A stretch of 63,276 bases of DNA, filler included, from Lenisia limosa (lineage: Eukaryota; Protista; Breviatea): NCBI GenBank assembly GCA_001655205.1. It is 20 parts of 20 records of this genome, joined end to end, with 100 filler letters (N's around TTAATTAATTAA, not from the genome) between each part and the next. Parts side by side here need not be neighbours in the genome. Positions count along the whole stretch, not along the records: positions 20,610 to 25,849 come from LPNZ01011101.1; 19 more parts are not named here. One strand, 5' to 3'. The notes under the pieces are model-generated. The model was not told the origin of the DNA. It saw nothing but the letters and a program-made list of their open reading frames with translations, and ran no database searches. Below are positions 3,425 through 26,097 of the stretch, one piece after another; position 1 is the first letter of the stretch, and every line of letters starts with the position of its first letter. Both the position numbers and the translations under genes were made by a program.

Positions 3425-5779
3425 CTACTCCGCCATCCACGCGTATTCCAACAGGTCTGACGAGCTTGGTCGAAGTTTTGTGTCTCTGGGGGGGGGGGGG
3501 TTANNNNNNNNNNNNNNNNNNNNNNNNNNNNNNNNNNNNNNNNNNNNNNNNNNNNNNNNNNNNNNNNNNNCCCCTAGATGCTGATTTAAAGCAGATGCAT
3601 ATTGTATCCCACCTGATGAAACAGGCCTGGAAGAATTCAACGAGATCTGGGTCGGCATGGAGGGATTCGGGGAGGGTTGGGGGAGGGGTCTCGGGATTGG
3701 CAATTGTGAGGAGGAGAGTGACTGTGTCCAAGTCCGACCTTAGGAAAGAGTGACAAATAGGGCTTCACTTCGGTTCGAAAAAAGACTGAATTTCTCGATA
3801 AATCATTTTTTCGAACCGAAGTGACAATGCTTCGTGATATGATGACAATCCCANNNNNNNNNNNNNNNNNNNNNNNNNNNNNNNNNNNNNNNNNNNNNNN
3901 NNNNNNNNNNNNNNNNNNNNNNNNNNNNNNNNNNNNNNNNNNNNNNNNNNNNNNNNNNNNNNNNNNNNNNNNNNNNNNNNNNNNNNNNNNNNNNNNNNNN
4001 NNNNNNNNNNNNNNNNNNNNNNNNNGCTGACTATAAACGGTATAATAGACGACAGCAAACATGGGAGGTATAATAGACGACAGCAAACATGGGAGGGTGG
4101 AGGATGGGGTCAATAAAGCAATCCCCCCACCAATTGGTTAACCACTTCCTGGGCCATGAAGGCGGGCGAACCAGCAAACGTGTTGGCACCTGGATAGTTA
4201 AATGACTTCTTCTGTAATGGCAGTTTACGGGGTCAAACAATTGCGGCCCTTCCCATCAAGCAAACGCTGCACATAACATGCTATCCGACTCACCTTTCGT
4301 CAAGGTTGCCATTTGGTTGAGGTGTTTGGATGTGCCGAAATCGGCCAGTTTCACGTTGCCTTCAGCGTCCACCAGAACATTGGCTCCTTTCACGTCTGTG
4401 GAGCGTGTAAAGACGTAATCAACACAATAATACGCAAATACAATTAACATTGGATAAACTCATAAATTATTGGATACCGTATTTAATTTTTTTTTATTGG
4501 GATATGTGATACAACTTTTCTGTAATACGTTGAAATGAGAAAAAACGTATATCATACAGTCATACCTCTGTGGATAACACCCTGTTTGTGAAGGTACTGA
4601 AGTCCCTTGAGGATTTGCCTGGTAAAGTTACGGGCGACGTCTTGGCTGAGGGGACCGATTTCGTTGATAAGGGACTCTACTGATCCGCCTGTAGGGGAGG
4701 GGGGGAGGGCGTTATAATGGAACGAAGAAAATGACTACGTTTCAGGCGGGTCAACATTCATCAAATCCCATAGCTGTTAGAAAGTCCTAAAAATATTCAA
4801 CTGTATTAAGAAAATTGTCTGTTTTAAGAAGCAAACTGACCACCCAATATACCTGGCACGTACTCGAGGAAGAGGCTGAAGGTGTCATTGGTGACCTCGC
4901 ACCCAAGATACTGCACAACGTTGGTGTGTGTAATGCGACTGAGAATAGCCACTTCCAACTCCAGGCTTGAGGCGGCTGCTGACACGTCTGCTCCTCCTCC
5001 ACCTGAACAGTAAATGCATGATCTAATATTTATGTATGTATGTGCATGGGTTTATTTTTGTACGCTATCAAATCCTTGATAATATCCACATTTCGCCGGT
5101 CTTTTACAACCATACACATAACTTATGATTCAAGCAAATGAATGTTTCAAATGCAACCTACCAAGATAGCACTCCTTTACTGCGAGGAGGCGGCCAGTTG
5201 ACAAGTTGATGGCCATAAAGACCTGGGGGGGGGGGGTAAGCTCCGAANNNNNNNNNNNNNNNNNNNNNNNNNNNNNNNNNNNNNNNNNNNNNNNNNNNNN
5301 NNNNNNNNNNNNNNNNNNNNNNNNNNNNNNTTGAGGACAGGTTTAACGATTTCATCGGCAATGACTCAAGTCATAAACTTTAATATGGAATGACGAACGC
5401 CAACAAACCTGTCCAAAAGATCCTGAACCGAGACACCTGCCCTTCTTCCAAGGGAACGGGGCCTTTCGCTGAGTAATGTAAGAGGGTTTTGCAGTTAAGT
5501 TCTAATATCAAAACTGGGAAGCTTCGGCCAATGAGATATCGATGTAAATTGACATATTTGAAAAGAGAGCTTCTTTCATATCAGGTTCTAACAACCACTG
5601 TATTCTCAAAAAAAAATAAAAAAAAAATTACAAAAATCCAAATAAATGTCGATGCTTTGGACAGCCCATGTAAAGCTCCAAACACACAACCAACCTGGAT
5701 GCATCCACCCTCCGAGGTGCTGCCTTGCTGCTGCTGACCTGACGGCACCACCTGACTGTTCGTACGCTGGCTGGTCACT
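3425..5779 (-). CDS. STE11/MEKK-like MAP kinase kinase kinase, 5' partial
   Basis: Spliced kinase subdomains: WKKGRCLGSGSFGQ / VFMAINLSTGRLLAVKE / HTNVVQYLG..LFLEYVPG / GGSVESLI..GLQYLHKQGVIHR / DVKGANVLVDAEGNVKLADFGTSK / FAGSPAFMAQEV / RPSSSDLLEYAWMAE-TAG. Confidence 0.92.
3758..3824. mobile_element. MITE-A, internally deleted
   Basis: TAgggcttcacttcggttcgaaaaaagac..ttttcgaaccgaagtga in a MAP3K intron. Confidence 0.8.
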
Positions 5780-7927: not shown

Positions 7928-8107
7928 NNNNNNNNNNNNNNNNNNNNNNNNNNNNNNNNNNNNNNNNNNNNTTAATTAATTAANNNNNNNNNNNNNNNNN
8001 NNNNNNNNNNNNNNNNNNNNNNNNNNNGGAGGAGGGAGGAGGTATATCGCAACAGTTTTGGGCTCTTTTTTTTTTTGCTTCATAAATTGTCCAATTTCAC
8101 CCCGCAG

Positions 8108-11100
8108 GCACTTTCCCTTTCGTCTAAAAAAGACCGGGTGTTTGACAGCGAATTCTCACAAATTCCGCTGGTCATCGAGGGCAAGGCTGTTTCCTCCTCC
8201 CTCTGGATCTTCAATGACATTATTCTCTTCGGTATTTGGGCTTTCGTTGTGTTTATATTCATTATTTGGGTTTCAATTGCTCTTTGGAAATTTAAGCTTT
8301 TAATTATTCCCGGGCTCCTTGCAATTAATTGCCATAATTGGCTTTTTTTTGAAGCAGTTACACAGAACCCTAATTATCTTATTCGTTTGCGTCTTCAAGT
8401 ATATTAATCACTTTTCATACTTGAATCTTCTTCTCTTTGTGTATGTTGGTCTTTTTATTGTTTTTTTTTCCTCTTTTGTATCATCAACGACATCATTCTT
8501 TCCTCTCTTACCNNNNNNNNNNNNNNNNNNNNNNNNNNNNNNNNNNNNNNNNNNNNNNNNNNNNNNNNNNNNNNNNNNNNNNNNNNNNNNNNNNNNNNNN
8601 NNNNNNNNNNNNNNNNNNNNNNNATTTACACCCCACCTTTACACCAATATTCTCCATCAAAACCTCTTTCACTTTACTCATACTCCCCTCCTCAGCTACC
8701 CCACACAAAAACATAAGAAAATGTGTCCCACTCCTCTGTTATTATTTTCCACCCTCTCTTTCATAGAAATTTCATAGCGATATTCAACTGGCCTTTGTTT
8801 TGTTGTTTTCAACCCTCGTGTGTTGTTAGCAACAAAGTTGATTTTGGGCTCTTTTTGTTTCAAAAATTTTCCGGTTTTACTCCCCCCCCAGCCATCCCGA
8901 ACAAGAGACATCAGAAAATGTACCCCCTCACACTAGTTGCTGCTATTCAGCCGAAAAGAGCCATGTATCGAACGTCTACTGCCCAGTGTGATGTAGGCAA
9001 TACTCCTGTTATTTTCAGCTTTATTATTACCTTTTATTAAGCAAACGACTTGAGAATTAGCCTTTCTTGTAGTAGTTGGGAATTACCTTACTTGTAATTA
9101 AGAATCACCTTTTTCTTCTCATTATTCAAGGGAGTGGAAGAGAAGGTTTTGCACCTCGAAGACACCTACGACAACAGCCAGGTCACCATCGCAATTCGAA
9201 GTGAAGTTGCTGTTGGGGGNNNNNNNNNNNNNNNNNNNNNNNNNNNNNNNNNNNNNNNNNNNNNNNNNNNNNNNNNNNNNNNNNNNNNNNNNNNNNNNNN
9301 NNNNNNNNNNNNTAATACTTATCGGATTTTTAACTTGGGCTCCCTGCAATTTATCGGAAAATTAATTTGAAATTTTTGAAGTTGGACATATTTTCATTAT
9401 CAGTTTTTTTGGAATAAAATCAAGATAAACAAATATATTATCTTGTAAACACGGTGTCATCTCACACTCCAGTTCTTGGAGGAGAAGCTAACAAAGCTGG
9501 TGAAGAAGGCCATGCGAACTTCTGCTTCAAGTATGGTTAATCAAACATATTTTATATAATATACAGTGACCTGTCCTATTAGCTAATGTGATTTTCCATT
9601 TTGTTGTCAAGTCAGCCAACAGAATTGATTTAGGCCTTTTTTTTTGTCAACCCTCGTATGTCAGCCAACAGAGTTGATTTGGGTTTTTTTGTTTCGTAAA
9701 TTTTCCAATTTCACCCCCCCCCNNNNNNNNNNNNNNNNNNNNNNNNNNNNNNNNNNNNNNNNNNNNNNNNNNNNNNNNNNNNNNNNNNNNNNNNNNNNNN
9801 NNNNNNNNNNNNNNNNNNNNNNNNNNNNNNNNNNNNNNNNNNNNNNNNNNNNNNNNNNNNNNNNNAAGAAAAGCATTGAACATGACAAGAGAAAGTCGCA
9901 GATCTTCAGCAAACGGAAGCGAACGACTGTTATTGCAGACTCCAAGCCAACCACTACTTCCGTGCCGGCGTGGGTGTGGGTCATCTCATTTCGGTTTTAC
10001 AAGTGAATATTACGCGGGTTTGGGTTTTTGAGAGAAAAAGATAAAGGCGCATCTAAAAATGGAGCAAAATGGTTATAGGGTTACCATAAAGAGTAAAGTC
10101 TCTGTTGAAACTAGGATCATATTTATACGGTCTTTTTGGGACCGTAGGTCGAAGTATTCCGAGGGCTTCGCTACGGTCCGAAAACGACCGGTAAATTCCG
10201 ATACGTCTCAAGGATTAATTTGGAAATTCACTTTTCCTGGGGGGAGGAAGGGGGGGGGGNNNNNNNNNNNNNNNNNNNNNNNNNNNNNNNNNNNNNNNNN
10301 NNNNNNNNNNNNNNNNNNNNNNNNNNNNNNNNNNNNNNNNNNNNNNNNNNAAAACCGTTTACTCCTGGTGTTCACGCTACCCCTGGAGGAGACAACGTTG
10401 CTGTGGCCGTCAGTCCAAGTGTCAAGGCAAAGTGTTCGAAAAATGGTAGGGTGCAATAGGTAATACAGCGAAAGTACAAGATAAGGGTTGGTGGAATAGT
10501 CTAGTAAATCATACAGCTGTTGACTTCAAGGATCATATAATTCAATATTTAAAAAACGGCTCTTTTTTGGAAAAATAAATAATCAGATATTAAATATTGC
10601 GTGAAATTATATTATTGATTTTATTCCCGGAAAAACTGTTTTCTCACCTTCTTCAGTGATAAATGCCCAGACTGCTACCAATGTGAGAGGATAGAACCTC
10701 TTTTGCTAATTTAATAGTTCCCATTTATAATATTCATCCCTCTCTTTTTTCATAAATTTAATCCCACCCACCCCCCTCGCATATTGTTTTTGTTTTTTGT
10801 TTTTATGTTTTTGTCATCTCCTGTTTTGCTACTTATNNNNNNNNNNNNNNNNNNNNNNNNNNNNNNNNNNNNNNNNNNNNNNNNNNNNNNNNNNNNNNNN
10901 NNNNNNNNNNNNNNNNNNNNNNNNNNNNNNTGGGTAACAAATTAACAAATAATTACATGGGGATACCATAAAATATTAGTATCGCTTTTTCTTTTGTTTA
11001 TCATCCCCCGCCCCCCGATGCTTGATTTGAACTCTCTTTTTTTTTCATAAGTTTTCCATTTTACCCTCCCAGGACCTTGAGGTTGTGAGCATCAAAAGCC

Positions 11101-11132
11101 CCTCGTCCAAGGCAGCATCGCGACGGTTTTAG
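8108..11132 (+). CDS. PH-domain protein (RhoGEF-type PH and C-terminus), 5' partial
   Basis: Exons ALSLSSKKDRVFDSEFSQIPLVIEGKAVSSSLWIFNDIILFG (resembles the LFLFND motif of DH-associated PH domains), IPNKRHQKMYPLTLVAAI, FLEEKLTKLVKKAMR, and last exon DLEVVSIKSPSSKAASRRF-TAG. Confidence 0.55.
8788..8891 (+). mobile_element. IE-1 intron-3'-end repeat, sense, ends at acceptor AG
   Basis: ctggcctttgttttgttgttttcaaccctcgtgtgttgttagcaacaaagttgattttgggctc..ttttactcccccccccAG followed by exon. Confidence 0.85.
9601..9722 (+). mobile_element. IE-1, two stacked copies
   Basis: tcagccaacagaattgatttaggc then tcaaccctcgtatgtcagccaacagagttgatttggg..aattttccaatttcaccccccc. Confidence 0.8.
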
Positions 11133-11244
11133 TTATTTATTATTCGTCTGTATTGTTTTGTTTTTAAAAATATAATCCATATTTTTGTTGAACTCTTAAC
11201 ATGAGATGAGGTGCAGCAACCTGGGTTCTGTTCCCAAAATCAAT

Positions 11245-11305
11245 CTGAAGGCTGACAAAACACAAGACTTGTTGTTATCAAGTCTTGTGTTTTGTCAGCC
11301 TTCAG
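11245..11305. repeat. Perfect inverted repeat: 27-bp stem, 7-nt loop
   Basis: ctgaaggctgacaaaacacaagacttg-ttgttat-caagtcttgtgttttgtcagccttcag. Confidence 0.95.
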
Positions 11306-12748
11306 TCAATTTACCTCCACGCTGGAAATACCTCTTGCTGTGTTTGAGTAATTAATTCAACAAGCCCTGTGAATGGTTGAACTGAACTCCCTCGAGAAAA
11401 TATGACATCTCCCCCAATTGAGCCACTGTTTAATCTTCATCTGAAATGCATTAAATACCATAGAACCTAGCAAAATGATACCATAAAAACCCAAACATTT
11501 CCACCTATTCAGCCGCTTTTTCTTGTTTCTTTCTCATAACGACAGCCTTAACTGCATCAGCACGATACACCGAATCCACGGCTACAGGATAGGCCTCCTT
11601 ATAGATTTTCTGGGGTCATTAAGCTAAAAAAAAACAATAATTATACAATTATTACTCTTGTTCAAACAATAAATGAAGAGACAATTAACAATAACAATAA
11701 GAATGAAGAATGTATATATCGCGGGAAATGAAACAAGGTTGTATCTGGCCGAAGACGCCCACCCCATCACGGTTATAAGTGGATATAAGTCGAATATTAA
11801 ATCAATTTCTTTTATAATATTTAAAGTAAGATANNNNNNNNNNNNNNNNNNNNNNNNNNNNNNNNNNNNNNNNNNNNTTAATTAATTAANNNNNNNNNNN
11901 NNNNNNNNNNNNNNNNNNNNNNNNNNNNNNNNNGGCTTGTCTAAATATGAGGTGCCCTTGTTTGTGAACTCGGAGATGACCCCTTTATTTTTCTAAAAAT
12001 ACAACTTTAAGCTTCTGTTTTTTTTTTCGGGTTCAAAAAAAAGTGGACCTCAGATTTGGTTGAGCCATATTTTTGAGAGAGGTATTATTTCATTTTATCT
12101 ACTCTCTTATTATTGCTCCAAACAAATAAAACAGTTAGTATGGTTTGATCTGAACTGATAAAATATCGATAGTTTTAAAGAAATTCAATGTTTTTCGAAC
12201 CGAAGTGAAGCCTTACTGTAAGGCAAACATGCTTCGGTCAGATACAACCTTGTTTGAATTCTCATCTCTTCATTTGTGGGTGTATGTCATATGAGTAGCG
12301 TGAGTGGATAATATGGGAGTAGGTAAATCTGGAGAGGTTTGTATGAGAGCTCTACTTTCGGTTCCAAAAGACTAGAAAACTATCGATATTTATCGAGGAT
12401 TTATCGAGAATTCAGTCTTTTTTGGAACCGAAAGTGAAGCTTTTGTTTGTATGGGGGAGGTATTACAGGGGGTAATAATATCATATGGGAAAAACAATAG
12501 ATATTTATTCACTTTCCTCTGACTATATCTTGACCTTTCCCAGGAGGAGAGGCGATGTTTCGAACATGTTACGCTGAGGGATGCAGTTCCAGTGAGGCTT
12601 ACAGTGTAAGTGACAAAATATTGTACCAATAATGGTGGAAGTAGAATCATTTTGTGGCAGTTCTCAAGCACAGATCATGCCAAATTAAAGAAACAGAAAC
12701 ATCACCTCACTTACTCAACCTAGCAATATCATAATTATCTTACTCAAT

Positions 12749-12845
12749 TAGGGCTTCCCTACGTCCCAAAAAGACCGGTTAATATCGATGTTTATCGAGG
12801 ATTTATCGAGAAATCCGTCGTTTTTGGGATCGTAGGGAAGCCCTA
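12749..12845. mobile_element. MITE-A subfamily 2, full length
   Basis: TAgggcttccctacgtcccaaaaagac..gtttttgggatcgtagggaagcccTA. Confidence 0.88.
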
Positions 12846-20509: not shown

Positions 20510-20958
20510 NNNNNNNNNNNNNNNNNNNNNNNNNNNNNNNNNNNNNNNNNNNNTTAATTAATTAANNNNNNNNNNNNNNNNNNNNNNNNNNNNNNNNNNN
20601 NNNNNNNNNGGAGGGGGGGGAGCAGTGAAAGTGATAAACACCCTAAACACCCTATATTCAACTTTGATGGCTACACTGACATTCGGGTTAAACCCAAAGC
20701 GCAGTAAATTTTAAGGATCTTTACTTTATGATAAAATAAGCGTCAAAATCACCCACTTTTGAACTGTTTCGCTGCGGATGGGTGAGAACGGCCCATCCTG
20801 GCATGTTTGCTAAAGAGAGTCAGGGCAAGACAAAGGCGAAGTTAAACGTTTTTAAAGGCTTCATAAGACCAATATTATGGATATTTTGGACATTATGGAT
20901 ACTTAATATTATTATATGCATATGATATTTTTTATACATATAATATTAACAATATATA

Positions 20959-21035
20959 CAGTGACCTGCATAAGTCTTGACCGATTTTCCTTGGGAATCA
21001 GATAGCAATTTGGTCAAGACTTATCCCGATCACTG
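20959..21035. mobile_element. MITE-B, Tc1/mariner-type ends (also 23999-24075, 50127-50204, 59523-59599)
   Basis: TA|CAGTGACC..ataagtcttgaccgatttt..tggtcaagacttatccc..TCACTG, ~77 bp with ~28-bp imperfect TIRs. Confidence 0.85.
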
Positions 21036-21166
21036 TCTAAAGAGCAATACACTACACTAAAAGGTATCAAGGCAGACATACTGTACGGGTACTTATGTTT
21101 ATTTACAAAGGGACAAAGTAAGAGTTTCAAGCCGGTTTTTTTTTTGTGAAATGAGGTACAAAGCAA

Positions 21167-24100
21167 CTAAGAGCACATATGGTCGCCAACATTTCGGGTG
21201 ACAGCGGAGGCCATTTCATGGTGCGTCATGCCGACTATAGAGCAAAGTCCAATGGCGTTCTGCGGGGGGTGGGTAAAGTTGGAAAATTTATGAAACAAAA
21301 AAGCCCAAAATCAACTCTATTGACTGATAACAGACAAGGGTTGATAACAAAACTAACAACGCCCAGGCCAGTCACTTCTGCAGCCCCGCATCCCATCGGG
21401 GGGGGGGGGGTAACAAAGGTGGAGGTTATAGTGGGAACTTGAGAACCACAGAGGGAACTATCAGATTGTAAGGGCGTAATATATGGGGGTATGCAAAGAT
21501 AACATATCTGGGCATACAATGTCTGCCCCTCCACCTTAAGAACGATTTCATAAAAAGACTGAATTTCCCTATAAATCCTCGAAAACTAGATAAGATATGC
21601 CCCCCACTTCAGCCTTCAGGAGTGTCCCAGCTGGCTTCTCAAGATACACGGCGATCAGGAGATCGGCCAGGCCAGACGCGGCGACAGAGGGTGCAAGAGG
21701 CTCAGGGGCCACAGTATTGTCGGCATCCGGGGGTGGAGTGGCCTGGGGAGGGGGTTAGATTCTGCGATTATATAAAAACCAAGTTGAGACACTAAATGAA
21801 GTAGCACAACCATCAGTAGGAACTCACCGGAGGGGCATCCATTGGCTTGTTGCGCTGCGGGAATCTGAAGGATGAGAAATGATCTCAGACAAAGAGGGAA
21901 GAGAGAGACAAAACGATATGATAACCATTGTATTTGATTTGCACCACGTAAAACGAGATACAGGATTGTCTTTCTCCAACACATACACTTTCGAGATGAA
22001 ATGCTGTTATTATTGTGAATTGGCTGTCAAGTAGAGCGAGCTTCACTTCGGTTCGAACAATACCGTAAAAATAGATAATTTTCGAAGATTTATCGAGAAA
22101 TTCAGTCTTTTTCCGAACCGGTGAAGCCCTAATTATTACATGTAAATAGAGATTAATATATATAATACTGCATCAAAAGAATATCAGTAATATCTGAACA
22201 TGTGGAAAAGACTTAACTGGATACGATAAGCTTGGCTACCTTGTTGGTTTGTCGCCCGGGGGGGAGGAGGGGTGCTTTTTCTCGGTTGTTTTTTTGGCCT
22301 CTTTTTCAGTCACAAACTACGTGGTGAATGGTGAATGCAAAGAATACGGGTTTTGGAATAGCAACGATGTGGAACTTCAAAATTTGCTTTGTTTTTATCT
22401 ACTATACTTCAACAAAATTTACAGCTCTCCTCCAAACTCCGTTCAAAAGTATCACCAATAAAGACCCCAACTTTGGTTACATAGACCCCATGTTACCTTC
22501 ATTATCCACCCATGTTAGCTTAGTTATCCACCCCCCATGTTAGCTTAGTTATCCACCCCCCATGTTAGNNNNNNNNNNNNNNNNNNNNNNNNNNNNNNNN
22601 NNNNNNNNNNNNNNNNNNNNNNNNNNNNNNNNNNNNNNNNNNNNNNNNNNNNNNNNNNNNNNNNNNNNNNNNTCGCTCGAGGTAGAGGGCAGGGTCGAGA
22701 GAAACAAGAGCCACGTCGGCCGAGCCCTTAGTCAGTGAGCCGCCGGCACGCTGAATGGCACGATCCAGAGCGCTGGTTAGGGACGTTTTGTCCACCCCGG
22801 CGTGGCTGATGGCTGCACTGAGGAAGGCCACAGACTCATCACTCCTAATATGGTAAGTTGAGGATGGGGTGTTCCAAATATCGTAAGATGAGGAAGGAAT
22901 ATTCTTCATTGGGAAGTTTTTTTTTATCAATTGTTTCACAAATCTGGTGTATAACAAGTTCATTAATGGGGCGAAAGTCCTCTAAAACCAATGGGGCAAT
23001 GAAAAGAGACACCCTCACATGATGTACTCAGAGATCCTGAAGAGGGGCTTGATTCCTTCTCTAACTAGGTGATCCCTGCCGACTGGCCACCTGCCGGGGG
23101 TAAGGTTTAGGTATACTGAATAAGGTGCAACCTGGAAAATATATGAAACAAAAAAACCCCAAATCAACTNNNNNNNNNNNNNNNNNNNNNNNNNNNNNNN
23201 NNNNNNNNNNNNNNNNNNNNNNNNNNNNNNNNNNNNNNNNNNNNNNNNNNNNNNNNNNNNNNNNNNNNNNNNNNNNNNNNNNNNNNNNNNNNNNNNNNNN
23301 NNNNNNNNNNNNNNNNNNNNNNNNNNNNNNNNNNNNNNNCACGTCACCGCTGCCATGACGTCACAACGCGCCATTACCTCAGTTGCCTTACTAGGAGCTG
23401 CCTAATATGGTAAGTCTGCTAAAAAAAAACTCAATCTGCTTAATATGATAAGTCAGCCCAAAAAGCCCTTCAAAAAGCCCCCACGTGGATTCTTGCTCTC
23501 GACGCCACATATTGCGCAGACGCAGCTTTAACGCAACAGAGCGCAGCCGACACAAGCCCGCGGATACAGTCCTCATCAACACGGCACGTGACCATCGTGT
23601 CTGTCAATAGAACGGACATTTCCGGTACACGTGCCATGATAGCCGCCTTGGCGATGCTAAAGTAAGCCGAGAGCCACGTGATGCCTATTTCATTGGTCAC
23701 GGGCTTTTTCATTTGGCATGGCTCGAAGAAGGCTGACGAGTCCTCCAGTGAGTCCTATGGGGGTGAAGGTTTGCAACGCAAAAAGACAAAAAACACAACT
23801 AGGATCACCACCATTTAGCCCCCCCCCCCCCNNNNNNNNNNNNNNNNNNNNNNNNNNNNNNNNNNNNNNNNNNNNNNNNNNNNNNNNNNNNNNNNNNNNN
23901 NNNNNNNNNNNNNNNNNNNNNNNNNNCACAGTACTTCTTGCATTCCTCCATAACTACGGGGAGAAGATCCTTCGTTACCCTAATAGATCAGATACATACA
24001 GTGACCGGGATAAGTCTTGTTCGATTTCCAGGAAGGAAATCCGTCGTAAATCGGTCAAACTTATCCCGGTCAGTGAACATGTAAGCAGTACGGTAAGATA

Positions 24101-25790
24101 TATTATCTGCCAATGATATGAGGCAGTAGTAATACATACTTACATATGATATGATATGGAATAATATTATACCACATGAGTGAATATTGCTTTAGTTCTA
24201 TGTGATAGTATAACATATTTCACTAAATTGAGAAAAAAGGTTGTATCTGGTCGAAGCCGTCCACACCATCCCGCTTATAAGAGATATTGGATTGTAGTAT
24301 AATATTAACTCACCCAATCATTTGCCTTACAACTCTGTTCAAGGCTTTCTGTGCCCCCCCCCCCCTCTCTCAGCATACATTGGAGCAATGTCATGCATCA
24401 TGTTCTGGAACAGCGNNNNNNNNNNNNNNNNNNNNNNNNNNNNNNNNNNNNNNNNNNNNNNNNNNNNNNNNNNNNNNNNNNNNNNNNNNNNNNNNNNNNN
24501 NNNNNNNNNNNNNNNNNNNNNNNNNNNNNNNNNNNNNNNNNNNNNNNNNNNNNNNNNNNNNNNNNNNNNNNNNNNNNNNNNNNNNNNNNNNNNNNNNNNN
24601 NNNNNNNNNNNNNNNNNNNNNNGATTTATGTGAAAAAAAAATAACCCCAGAGCTCTGCTGGATAAGCGTTTGTGAAATATGTGATTGCTGAGAGTCTGGG
24701 TGCAATATATCGGCTCTCTCCCCCTCCCTCATAACACAGCACCACTCACGGCCTTGGGCGACAGCAGTCTTGAGAGCATGGATAGGGAACTGAGGCGTCG
24801 CTTCGGCTCTGAGCAGGCCACTTTTGCAACACTCTGAAGGAGCTGGGGGGGGGGGGGGGGGNNNNNNNNNNNNNNNNNNNNNNNNNNNNNNNNNNNNNNN
24901 NNNNNNNNNNNNNNNNNNNNNNNNNNNNNNNNNNNNNNNNNNNNNNNNNNNNNNNNNNNNNNNNNNNNNNNNNNNNNNNNNNNNNNNNNNNNNNNNNNNN
25001 NNNNNNNNNNNNNNNNNNNNNNNNNNNNNNNNNNNNNNNNNNNNNNNNNNNNNNNNNNNNNNNNNNNNNNNNNNNNNNNNNNNNNNNNNNNNNNNNNNNN
25101 NNNNNNNNNNNNNNNNNNNNNNNNNNNNNNNNNNNNNNNNNNNNNNNNNNNNNNNNNNNNNNNNNNNNNNGCTTTGAGAAACATAGGAGAGTTGAAAATA
25201 ACAAAACACGCAAGCAAAGACCAATTGCTTGGAGGTGGGGCAGTATTAGTAGTAGGGCTTCTCTTCAGTTCGAAAAAAAACTAATTTCTTGATAAATCCT
25301 CGAAAACTATCGATATTTTACCAGTATTTTCCGAACCGAAGTGAAGCCGTTACTATTAGTTATCAAAATGGGTTTGGATGAGGATTGACTCGCCTACCAT
25401 TTCAACAAGGTGCAAGAGGAAGTCAACAAAGTTGCTTGTTAGGCCTTCAGTGTGCGGTGATGCTAAAAGTGCCTTTGTCTACGGGGTAAATGCTCGCCAT
25501 TGTTCGAGTAAAAGACTGCATGATTATCATTGTGAGAGTAATACAATGAATGGTGGGAGCATGGCTAATTGGCTGTGATGGTGAACACTGTGAAAGTCCA
25601 CTTAATATGATACTCCATCATGAAACGCGATTATTGATAAAATGTCATATGTACATTTAAGTTCCATTTCCCCAGGTTGCATATAGAAAACTACGATGAA
25701 CTGCAACAGGCAGAAATAGCTGCAAATGTGCCCCTTTACCAGCGGGTGGATGGTTGGCTTCGTCAGCGCTGGATGTGTTAACAATAACAA
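21167..25790 (-). CDS. Large hypothetical alpha-helical protein, multi-exon, 5' partial
   Basis: More than 10 open exons with canonical sites (e.g. ITWLSAYFSIAKAAIMARVPEM, DESVAFLSAAISHAGVDK). Last exon NAIGLCSIVGMTHHEMASAVTRNVGDHMCS-TAG. No family recognised. Confidence 0.55.
21260..21398 (-). mobile_element. IE-1, near full-length, at last-exon acceptor
   Basis: gatgggatgcggggctgcagaagtgactggcctgggc..tcaacccttg..agagttgattttgggc..cataaattttccaactttacccaccccccgcAG. Confidence 0.88.
22038..22131. mobile_element. MITE-A
   Basis: gagcttcacttcggttcg..ccgaaccggtgaagcccTA. Confidence 0.8.
24236..24350 (-). repeat. Dispersed repeat D/E (parts also at about 11726-11790, 12225-12258, 14865-14920, 27805-27864, 48859-48930, 63168-63220)
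   Basis: Shared gcacagaaagc..ttgtaaggcaaatgattgggtgaattaa and ggtggacggcttcg(g/a)ccagatacaacctt blocks. Both are joined in this copy. Confidence 0.7.
25253..25352. mobile_element. MITE-A
   Basis: TAgggcttctcttcagttcgaaaa..ccgaaccgaagtgaagccg. Confidence 0.85.
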
Positions 25791-26097
25791 TATCAGGACT
25801 TGATAAGAAAGCGGGACAGGTTAAAAACATATAATGAGAAATAAAAATANNNNNNNNNNNNNNNNNNNNNNNNNNNNNNNNNNNNNNNNNNNNTTAATTA
25901 ATTAANNNNNNNNNNNNNNNNNNNNNNNNNNNNNNNNNNNNNNNNNNNNATATTACACACAGAAAAAATGGCCCAAGTTGAGCAGCCGTAACTTTTCAAC
26001 CCTTACTGATTTTTTTTCATCGAAATTCATGATGCTTGCGGTTGTAGATTGTTATTAATTGGTTGAGAAAGCGGTTTATTGTACGTAAAGACTTATA

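Follow-up and report, generated by a model that had tools for sequence, protein, structure and literature searches.

IE-1, a high-copy introner-type element of Lenisia limosa found in the sense orientation at and near the 3' ends of introns

IE-1 is a mobile element of approximately 150 nt that is present in thousands of copies. It is of the introner type, and thus of a known general kind, with unusual habits: it mostly occupies, and probably operates, the acceptor side of introns alone, it is sense wherever orientation could be checked, and it nests in its own copies. No source of new spliceosomal introns is better supported than introners, and surveys seek copies that make up whole introns. 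The reading favored here, which we regard as probable while leaving substantial room for doubt, is that IE-1 is a high-copy, non-autonomous, sense-only introner-type element with a role in splicing and a spread mediated by RNA, both in the manner proposed below.

The window, a stretch of 63,276 nt assembled from 20 parts of the genome, contains one copy of IE-1 on the minus strand of the part derived from LPNZ01011101.1. A sequence-only reading had placed a dispersed repeat at 21260–21398; a copy is present at this location and its sequence matches the consensus proposed at that time. Read on the minus strand from 21397 to 21263, the copy runs from GATGGGATGCGGGGCTGCAGAAGTGACTGGCC to GTTTCATAAATTTTCCAACTTTACCCACCCCCC and is followed by GCAG, with the AG at 21261–21260. 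The copy (21263..21397, minus strand) starts with GATGGG, ~11 nt into the full element, and ends in CCAACTTTACCCACCCCCC. These limits are drawn from the sequence, from an HMM match on contig L129 (919–776, equivalent to window positions 21399–21256; model positions 7–153) and from steps in depth, which also agree with the borders given in the earlier reading. Contigs of DNA run X1 provide a baseline depth of 25–33. Depth rises to 677 at 21255–21262 and to 54,896 at 21263–21270, reaches a maximum of 353,000 at 21287–21302, and falls to 22,824 at 21391–21398 and 1,737 at 21399–21406. In this run, the 3' third of IE-1 is 5–8 times deeper. The window copy is matched by 3,967 of 195,906 X1 DNA contigs at a likeness of at least 80%, and 260 of the matching contigs continue beyond 21264 with sequence that no longer matches. 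On the minus strand, the copy is immediately preceded by a 13-nt C-run (a G-run on the plus strand; 21398..21410), which probably remains from the C-tract that received the insertion.

Open frames and G+C content are the basis on which the window's splice sites, and most of the exon-like calls in this study, were predicted, and at least one G+C-rich "exon-like" flank proved to be another repeat. The window copy lies within a predicted phase-0 intron of 348 nt (21260..21607, minus strand) that contains stops in all frames while the reading frame is kept across it, and that is also reflected in the depth profile. From its donor onward, the predicted intron comprises GTGGGGGG, a piece of a second repeat, single-copy sequence of ~130 nt, the C-run, IE-1 and GCAG. 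The repeat fragment (21547..21588, no strand assigned) is an internal piece of MITE-B, a different high-copy hairpin repeat, with inverted and direct matches to 22076–22117 and 25273–25309 and a depth of 3,326. The predicted acceptor AG (21260..21261, minus strand; ..CCCCCCGCAG|AAC) falls 2 nt after the C-run of IE-1, and the frame continues across the GT..AG interval. The predicted upstream exon (21608..21742, minus strand; ATPPPDADNTVAPEPL...LLKAE) has a G+C content of ~60%, and the predicted downstream exon (21170..21259, minus strand), called from its frame, reads NAIGLCSIVGMTHHEMASAVTRNVGDHMCS followed by a stop. Neither has a match in Pfam.

A second, partial IE-1 copy is present in the same orientation at 23133–23169 (within a feature at 23091..23169, minus strand). 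It is cut by an N gap and is followed by a 26-nt insert, the tail ACCTTACCCCCGGCAG and a predicted acceptor AG at 23092–23091 on the minus strand. The corresponding donor is in the N gap and can be read from contig L128 (1136–1137, GCACG|GTGGGT), with a phase that fits (CG|G). An exon seen only in L128 falls between a donor at 23484 and the acceptor at 23091. The host-gene exon at 23485..23754 (minus strand) is an orphan: among 1.84 billion protein representatives it matches only its own ORF, again from this sample, and the host gene had no Pfam match. Searches of sequencing runs returned a single DNA run and, from that study, one poly(A) metatranscriptome run, in which the gene is absent. IE-1 fragments occur in only 10 of the 180,449 contigs of the poly(A) RNA run versus the 3,967 DNA contigs noted above, a contrast that is suggestive of removal by splicing and that is uncalibrated for the organism's share of the RNA run.

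The family was characterized in same-sample contigs that total 98.8 kb (L128–L138, with L128 and L129 overlapping the window piece), a small set of loci picked by means of the IE-1 copies themselves. Gene calls on L134, which fail to translate under table 11, were set aside. An HMM built from 13 copies identified 45 copies in this set. The family is therefore far larger than the ~25 whole or partial copies counted earlier. The full unit of ~150 nt starts with GT(A/T)CG-CTGGAGTGATGGG and ends in GTTTCATAAATTTTCCAATTTTACT followed by a C-run of 6–20 nt, and an alignment of 15 copies places this unit among diverse flanks. As previously described, the copies reside in introns of unrelated genes, including the orphan gene of the window, an α-tubulin gene (L132), a PARP gene (L138) and other loci. 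Truncation is one-sided: 27 copies are truncated at the 5' end, at scattered points, and two at the 3' end. The 5'-truncated copies are slightly more diverged (84.7% versus 89.1% identity to the consensus), so part of this asymmetry could be decay in which only the spliced end is conserved.

Four copies that were folded had no stable structure relative to shuffled sequences (z = −0.85, +0.35, +0.96 and +0.60), and no likeness to tRNA, 7SL or 5S RNA was detected in any copy with Rfam and ARAGORN. An 18-mer of IE-1 hit at least 120 metagenome loci and seven viral loci, in each case by a chance match of 20–47 nt, and a two-part pattern of 29 bases had no match in collections of prokaryote genomes or of viruses. 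When single ORFs that cross the window copy served as queries, they returned nothing or the copy itself alone; a small profile of consensus-corrected antisense ORFs succeeded where the single ORFs failed. Seven of 13 antisense ORFs read ..TP(A/T)Y.. at the GT start of IE-1.

The sense orientation reported earlier held in each of nine copies in the two homology-anchored genes (two in α-tubulin and seven in PARP, p = 0.002), and no copy among the 45 can be shown to be antisense. An apparent antisense copy at L137 5113–5189, on the donor side of an exon, could equally belong to a convergent gene. The association with acceptors had been stated more strongly, with most copies said to end at the one used by the next exon. 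Enrichment is indeed strong: automatic counting places an AG no more than 3 nt from the C-run in 16 of 42 copies and hand correction raises this to 20, versus 22% by chance, and exon-like sequence comes next in 19 of 42 (45%) versus 19.7% expected (p = 1.6e-4). The extent was overstated, as approximately half of the copies end exactly at an acceptor and ~70% do so within 30 nt. Since the other ~30% are internal to introns, as in α-tubulin intron 5, the link is a tendency and not a rule. The AG itself, formerly included in the consensus, belongs to the host, and internal and nested copies do not have it. A sister family, IE-2, shares the end of IE-1, and eight of 11 IE-2 ends are followed by AG and exon-like sequence.

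The α-tubulin and PARP genes allow exon boundaries to be positioned by homology. The acceptor of α-tubulin intron 1 (L132) is pinned at codon 8/9, where the intron ends as ...AACTTG(C)6AG|T ATT GGC and exon 2 aligns to tubulin residues 9–34. In the PARP gene, the catalytic exon (PF00644, E = 4e-8) begins 27–30 nt past an IE-1 copy; two further exons that follow IE-1 ends were too short to be anchored by PDB or Pfam searches. The PARP intron at L138 8123..7922 begins with GTTTG and IE-1 from its first base, with the 3' part decayed. The exon before this intron ends in the PARP WGR motif (the only PDB hit being the WGR domain of PARP3) and the next exon resumes with KY. This is the one anchored case with similarity to both exon–intron borders; most copies reach the 3' border alone or neither border.

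That IE-1 usually does not start at a GT is true of most copies but not of the family, in which full-length copies have a GT at the very start (GTACG or GTTTG before CTGGAG; GTACG is found at L133 9645 and L134 2000). Because full copies carry a GT and one anchored PARP intron is essentially one copy, IE-1 is less a pure acceptor cassette than an ordinary introner, with 5' truncation or nesting in most copies. Its copies may install new 3' ends or may instead insert into the C-tracts of existing ones.

With respect to splicing, a pyrimidine run followed by an AG can act as an acceptor. The TTTTAC and C-run at the 3' end of IE-1 resemble a branch site and a pyrimidine tract, as the sequence-only reading had suggested, and element-free tubulin introns have TTTAC, TTAAC or TTCAC 12–30 nt upstream of the AG. 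From these motifs, an IE-1 end at an acceptor is most likely a working branch site and pyrimidine tract. The last ~25 nt would then serve as a 3' splice region comprised of the branch-site-like TTTTAC, the pyrimidine tract and the AG of the host, while a full copy could constitute a whole intron by using its own GT, and some copies may have created the introns in which they are found.

A different account, which we consider unlikely, holds that IE-1 is a passive short interspersed repeat of introns. It would prefer C-tracts that happen to precede acceptors, survive where and when its orientation does no harm to splicing, and neither create introns nor be needed for splicing. The internal copies and the placement of the AG outside of the element agree with this account, as does an enrichment of insertions beside existing C-runs in DNA where C/G runs are everywhere (179 of at least 6 nt in the 98.8 kb). 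However, an insertion between the old branch region and the AG moves the old branch site ~60–150 nt away, which leaves the TTTTAC of the copy as the sole branch-like motif in range. The PARP intron that begins at the GT of its own IE-1 copy and the uniform orientation of the nine anchored copies also argue against a passive repeat.

The favored reading, in which IE-1 participates in splicing, also includes a manner of spread, for which the insertion sites are informative. Copies frequently nest in older ones at the TTTTAC/C-run end; at L134 9322 and L137 5725, the copy separates the TTTTAC of an older one from its (C)n. A C-run is present within 30 nt of 12 of 44 IE-1 5' junctions versus 4.4% in controls, and 18 of the 44 abut a C-run or TTTAC end versus 8% in controls (p = 3e-9). 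A target duplication of at least 7 nt was shared by the flanks of one of 42 copies versus 1.9 expected, and a search with 11-mers around 33 acceptors gave no signal. No convincing inverted terminal repeats were found in the alignment of 15 copies, where the ends have a weak likeness (CTGGAGT / ACT(C)nAG), and a repeat scan of the window returned no inverted pair for the IE-1 ends.

Spread is probably by copying through RNA because truncation is confined largely to the 5' end, the homopolymer tail is variable, and neither inverted terminal repeats nor target duplications of at least 7 nt were found. The copy-and-paste step could be target-primed reverse transcription that starts at the C:G tract; alternatively, reverse splicing could come first and reverse transcription second. 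New copies would nest head-to-tail at the TTTTAC/C-run end of older IE-1 or IE-2 copies, leaving the youngest copy beside the AG, such that the intron would grow at its 3' end. SINEs and other non-LTR retroposons are known for 5' truncation, an intact 3' end, a variable homopolymer tail and insertion into the tails of older copies, and IE-1 resembles them in each of these aspects. In contrast to SINEs, the tail of IE-1 is C instead of A, and no flanking duplications, polymerase III-type head or partner LINE were seen in the 98.8 kb; we know of no C-tail among retroposons. No reverse-transcriptase ORF or partner element was noticed among the long ORFs listed for these contigs or in a Pfam scan of 10 short exon ORFs, although a partner may lie outside this small sample. 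Alu works as an acceptor in the antisense orientation and gives rise to exons; IE-1, by contrast, is sense and remains within introns.

A more specific model can be offered tentatively, with the odds somewhat against it. IE-1 and its sister families would be C-tailed, retroposon-like elements for which target and cargo are the same, namely the branch-site/C-tract module of the intron 3' end. Priming on the C:G tract at TTTTAC|(C)n would displace the old branch site and rebuild a working one beside the AG of the host. Such an insertion would be harmless in the sense orientation only, would home to the tails of its own kind and would lengthen introns in the 3' direction, with full insertions into exons founding introns that use their own GT.

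A DNA-transposon origin would make IE-1 a MITE-like derivative of a cut-and-paste transposon that generates introns in exons, with splice sites derived in part from the target-site duplication, as is the case in Micromonas, Aureococcus and Symbiodinium. Direct repeats do span both junctions of α-tubulin intron 1 (CCAGTATT, 8/8) and intron 9 (AAGGTCGG / AAGGTGGG), a G-run close behind the GT is matched by a C-run ahead of the AG in several introns, and the weak similarity of the ends of IE-1 could be read in the same way. However, the junction repeats flank whole composite introns and not IE-1 itself, and the lack of convincing inverted repeats or duplications at single copies and the one-sided truncation do not fit. 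DNA introners usually occur in both orientations, unlike IE-1. We thus regard this origin as improbable. Equally improbable is a route in which the IE-1 intron, once excised, enters transcripts by reverse splicing and returns to the genome by reverse transcription and recombination, with incomplete cDNAs replacing the 3' part of an existing intron: while it would account for the sense orientation, the missing duplications and inverted repeats, a full unit that spans from GT to just before the AG and truncated copies that retain the downstream-exon end, it is at odds with nesting at TTTTAC|(C)n without an intervening AG, with internal copies far from splice sites that are hard to make by a spliceosomal route, and with an element that has no stable fold, unlike fungal introner-like elements.

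Compared to other introners, IE-1 shares with those of Micromonas, Aureococcus and a wider survey (PMC9860276, PMC12130899) that it is a short, non-coding and non-autonomous family in introns of many unrelated genes, that a copy may equal an intron, and that splice signals are either carried or recruited. It differs from these families in that most copies take up only the 3' portion of introns that are longer and composite. It is also seen in the sense orientation only, without detected target duplications or inverted repeats, with a C-run tail and with truncation on one side. Introner family 1 of Symbiodinium microadriaticum (PMC9860276, Fig. 2B) is similar in that only the 3' splice region is supplied by the element, and the second site is external to it; however, that family has 4-bp target duplications, inverted terminal repeats and whole-intron copies, whereas neither duplications nor inverted repeats were found for IE-1 and its AG is that of the host. 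Fungal introner-like elements (PMC3609843) and the Alternaria families that lack target-site duplications and terminal inverted repeats (PMC9860276, Fig. 2A) resemble IE-1 in the absence of both features, in a unit that extends from splice site to splice site, and in decay into ordinary introns. The fungal elements are reported to have stable predicted structures (PMC3609843), in contrast to IE-1 (z between −0.85 and +0.96), which is further set apart by 5' truncation and self-nesting. In Amoebophrya (PMC7789003), a compact genome rich in orphan genes is likewise found, and the G-run after the donor and C-run before the acceptor seen in several introns here might pair as do the inverted repeats that end Amoebophrya introns; the introns examined here are GT-AG and IE-1 has no terminal inverted repeat. 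Amoebophrya as the source of this DNA, suggested by the poly(A) metatranscriptome run and by the G-run/C-run intron ends, is unlikely given an α-tubulin of the animal/opisthokont type and the GT-AG introns.

Published introner pipelines require that introns be similar at both ends, and they discard secondary insertions (PMC12130899). For these reasons, families such as IE-1 would be largely missed, and published introner counts may omit a class of families. If the favored reading is correct, mobile elements can reshape and extend introns that already exist, with replacement of the branch site, in addition to creating introns, and insertion tied to a homopolymer tract could explain an orientation bias without selection. 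With thousands of copies and clear borders, IE-1 provides a testable system for asking if introners move through RNA.

IE-1, a dispersed repeat of about 150 nt with one copy at 21263-21397 (minus strand), is more than a chance resemblance and is present in thousands of copies. One DNA sequencing run contains 98% of the sampled words of the stretch. Across 21215-21445, depth in the contigs of that run climbs from 25 at 21215-21246 to 54,896 at 21263-21270 and 353,000 at 21287-21302, then falls to 22,824 at 21391-21398 and is back to 33 by 21423. In total, 3,967 contigs show a likeness of 80% or more, and the 260 that extend beyond 21264 run into sequence without consensus apart from a G-run. 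The depth step and the diverging contigs thus place the borders where the sequence-only reading had drawn them; its observation of the repeat is confirmed, and the family exceeds the roughly 25 copies it counted. Public metagenome, viral and prokaryote collections returned only chance matches to IE-1. Other short repeats of the same window piece are also very abundant.

The piece carrying this copy (20610-25849) is eukaryotic DNA, and its N gaps all adjoin long C or G runs; some of the gaps are closed by L128 and L129, overlapping contigs from the same sample. Read on the minus strand, the copy consists of a 13-nt C-run (21410-21398), GATGGGATGCGGGGCTGCAG...GTTTCATAAATTTTCCAACTTTACCCACCCCCC, GCAG and AACGCC, as in the consensus first proposed. 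A splice is predicted around it, joining an upstream exon (21742-21608, minus) to a downstream one (21259-21170, minus) in the same frame; the 348 nt between them run from GT to AG and contain stop codons in every frame. This putative intron is composite, with the donor GTGGGGGG followed by a fragment of another repeat (21547-21588), about 130 nt of single-copy sequence, the C-run, IE-1 and finally GCAG. Another copy, partial and likewise oriented (23133-23169, minus), is interrupted by an N gap and has a 26-nt insert before the tail ACCTTACCCCCGGCAG seen in the first copy. Its predicted intron would run from a donor at L128 1136-1137, inside a window gap, to the acceptor AG at 23092-23091 (minus), with a phase that fits CG/G. 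The minus-strand host gene, including 23470-23754, is an orphan: no Pfam domain occurs in its largest exon, and among 1.84 billion representative proteins that exon matches only this ORF itself, again from this sample.

On one ENA contig from this sample, the gene annotation includes an antisense ORF that crosses the window copy. A small profile of that ORF, adjusted to the majority letters of the DNA-run contigs, was used as a query and found 47 such ORFs. The longest contigs obtained, chosen via these antisense ORFs (L128-L138, 98.8 kb), contain 45 copies of IE-1 according to an HMM built from 13 full copies, or about one per 2-3 kb. The unit was defined from the copy alignment and the 5' junctions. 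Eight copies have their exact start at CTGGAGTGATGGG, preceded by unrelated sequence, and the 3' end in all copies reads ...CCAATTTTACT followed by a run of 6-20 C. Conservation extends to the five bases 5' of CTGGAG (GTACG twice, GTTTG once, otherwise mostly xT..G), where 7/8 copies have T four bases before CTGGAG. Of 13 antisense ORFs crossing this start, 7 contain ..TP(A/T)Y.., the translated reverse complement of (G/A)TA.G. From the conserved bases and these ORFs, the full unit most likely begins with GT. Truncation is one-sided: 27 copies begin at scattered model positions 20-105 and keep the 3' end, only two lack it, and the 3' third is accordingly 5-8-fold deeper in the DNA run. No inverted terminal repeats were found, flank duplications of at least 7 nt surround 1/42 copies (1.9 expected), folding is not unusual (z -0.85 to +0.96), and comparison with tRNA, 7SL and 5S RNA gave no likeness.

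A sister family, IE-2, shares with IE-1 only the last ~25 nt (AAATTTCCTTCGTTTTAC plus C-run). IE-2 ends (...ATTCGGTTCGTGATTAGTACCTTTACGCCAATATTCTTCATCGAAATTTCCTTCGTTTTAC plus C-run) occur at L128 1-54, which lies within the window gap 24417-24622, at L130 2615-2661, L136 5276-5337 and L137 5725-5660, and elsewhere. AG and exon-like sequence follow 8/11 of them, and chimeric IE-2/IE-1 copies occur (L138 5650-5552).

Two conserved genes serve as anchors that are independent of IE-1, alpha-tubulin (L132, minus), of which 11 exon segments were mapped through translation, and PARP (L138, minus). Tubulin exon 1 codes MREVISI plus CA, and exon 2 aligns from its first residue with tubulin residues 9-34. 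As a result, the acceptor of intron 1 is fixed to the nucleotide, directly after the C-run of a 5'-truncated IE-1 (...AAATTAACTTG(C)6AG/T ATT GGC CAA). In intron 5, a full copy is internal, about 150 nt upstream of the acceptor. The PARP catalytic-domain exon (PF00644, E = 4e-8) begins 27-30 nt after a full copy. For another PARP exon, ending ...KTKNKWANRDNFTPYTG, the sole PDB match is the WGR end of PARP3 (E = 0.066, weak alone). After this exon comes GTTTG, then IE-1 starting with its first base, and the next exon reads G/GC AAG TAC (G-K-Y). The 202-nt PARP intron between these exons is essentially one partly decayed IE-1.

The interpretation offered earlier, a mobile cassette that supplies intron 3' ends, is supported in part. 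In the genes tested, IE-1 is sense to its host as claimed, in 9/9 copies within alpha-tubulin and PARP (p = 0.002). Of 42 copies that retain the 3' end, 16 (automatic count) to 20 (hand-corrected) have an AG no more than 3 nt from the C-run, versus 22% of random positions. Exon-like sequence after the first AG (G+C of 0.5 or more, open over 25 codons or more) follows 19/42 copies versus 19.7% of controls (p = 1.6e-4); the rule serves as a proxy only, and one G+C-rich flank turned out to be another repeat. By eye, ~45% of copies end exactly at such an AG, ~25% within 30 nt, and ~30% are internal or precede other repeats, so that "most" overstates how often the element ends at the acceptor. The claim that IE-1 does not begin at the GT holds for most copies, which are 5'-truncated or represent the 3' part only, but not for the probable full unit or the PARP intron. 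The AG itself belongs to the host site, since nested and internal copies lack it after the C-run.

IE-1 also favors its own end as a target. The 5' junctions of 18/44 copies adjoin a C-run or TTTAC-type end, compared to 8% of random positions (p = 3e-9). Several newer copies split an older IE-1 or IE-2 precisely between its TTTTAC and its C-run (for example L134 9322, L137 5725, L131 1055), and ..AYVK.. in three antisense ORFs corresponds to TTTTTAC/GTACG. In other cases, including the window copy, the C-run is split around the newer copy. Tubulin intron 1 has three successive C-run ends, the last adjoining AG. L137 5113-5356 contains two IE-1 copies whose 3' ends point towards each other; the 84 nt between them (5190-5273) are open on the minus strand only. 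Read on that strand, the end of the plus-strand copy gives the donor-like CTG/GTGAGGGG. The arrangement is either an antisense copy acting as the source of a donor or the meeting point of two convergent genes.

In the IE-1 end, TTTTAC + T + (C)n, an adenosine lies 9-20 nt before AG and only pyrimidines come after it; element-free tubulin introns have TTTAC, TTAAC or TTCAC 12-30 nt before AG. A copy inserted between the old branch region and AG would move the old branch site to a distance of 60-150 nt and bring its own. From these points, we infer that in about half of the copies the end most likely serves splicing as its branch site and pyrimidine tract. Cut-and-paste movement fits less well than copying through RNA, given the one-sided truncation, variable homopolymer tail, sense-only orientation, and lack of duplications or inverted repeats. 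Part of the one-sided truncation could instead reflect decay that spares the spliced end, as truncated copies are slightly more diverged. If IE-1 is copied through RNA, the G-strand of a C:G tract as priming site would alone account for sense orientation, the position before AG, split C-runs and self-nesting. No reverse transcriptase or partner element was seen in the 98.8 kb, and we know of no retroposon with a C-tail.

Introners have been reported from 201 species, with origins in a wide range of transposon types that includes non-LTR retroelements as well as elements whose mechanism is unknown (PMC12130899). Some introner families carry the 3' splice site (PMC9860276, Fig. 2B). IE-1 behaves like an introner, with one anchored whole-intron copy, but differs in that most copies form only the 3' part of composite introns, only sense orientation is seen, and the element has a C-tail, lacks duplications and inverted repeats, and homes to its own end. 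In published pipelines, both intron ends must show similarity, and secondary insertions are removed by filtering (PMC12130899, methods); a family like IE-1 would therefore be under-counted.

Long C or G runs are extremely common, with 179 of at least 6 nt in the 98.8 kb, many of 11-16 nt, against ~10 estimated by chance from base composition. They occur in the window at 20613-20621, 21398-21410, 23820-23832, 24354-24365 and 24842-24861 as well as throughout L128-L138, and almost every N gap of the piece adjoins one. IE-1 or IE-2 ends account for some of the runs only. Several introns that end in a C-run have a G-run straight after the donor (GTGGGGGG, GTGTTT(G)12-13, GTCGGGGG; window 21607-21600 and 23484-23478, L135 1653-1635, L132 ~5033), and the two ends could pair. 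Direct repeats span both junctions of the tubulin introns that end in a C-run module, with CCAGTATT at both ends of intron 1 (8/8; L132 7756-7749 and 7494-7487) and AAGGTCGG / AAGGTGGG at intron 9 (L132 ~5037-5030 and 4606-4599). These could be a target duplication from an intron-founding event; in the eight other tubulin introns, which lack a C-run module at the end, only 3-5 nt are shared across the junctions (AG/GT). Also in alpha-tubulin, an apparent 28-nt stretch (L132 5155-5128) between exons ending ..LLFRG and starting DVVPKD would, if real, be a very small intron.

Two hairpin repeats with inverted ends are present in the window, one with ACAGTGACCGGGATAAGTCTTG... (20955-21039 and 23992-24075) and one with GGCTTCACTTCGGTTCG... 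(22040-22120 and 25250-25350; summed depth ~96,000 in the DNA run). Weak Rfam matches to MIR319 proved to be these hairpins. A tandem 25-nt unit (CATGTTAGCTTAGTTATCCACCCCC) at 22495-22568 runs into an N gap, with at least one further unit in L129. Recorded gene calls throughout L134 contain stops under table 11; the gene caller seems to have used another code. Finally, L131 has a long FG-repeat ORF (8830-12759, minus) with a C-x2-C...C-x2-C motif at its start, which by eye appears nucleoporin-like, and a nearby tRNA-Lys(CTT) gene at 8055-8127.
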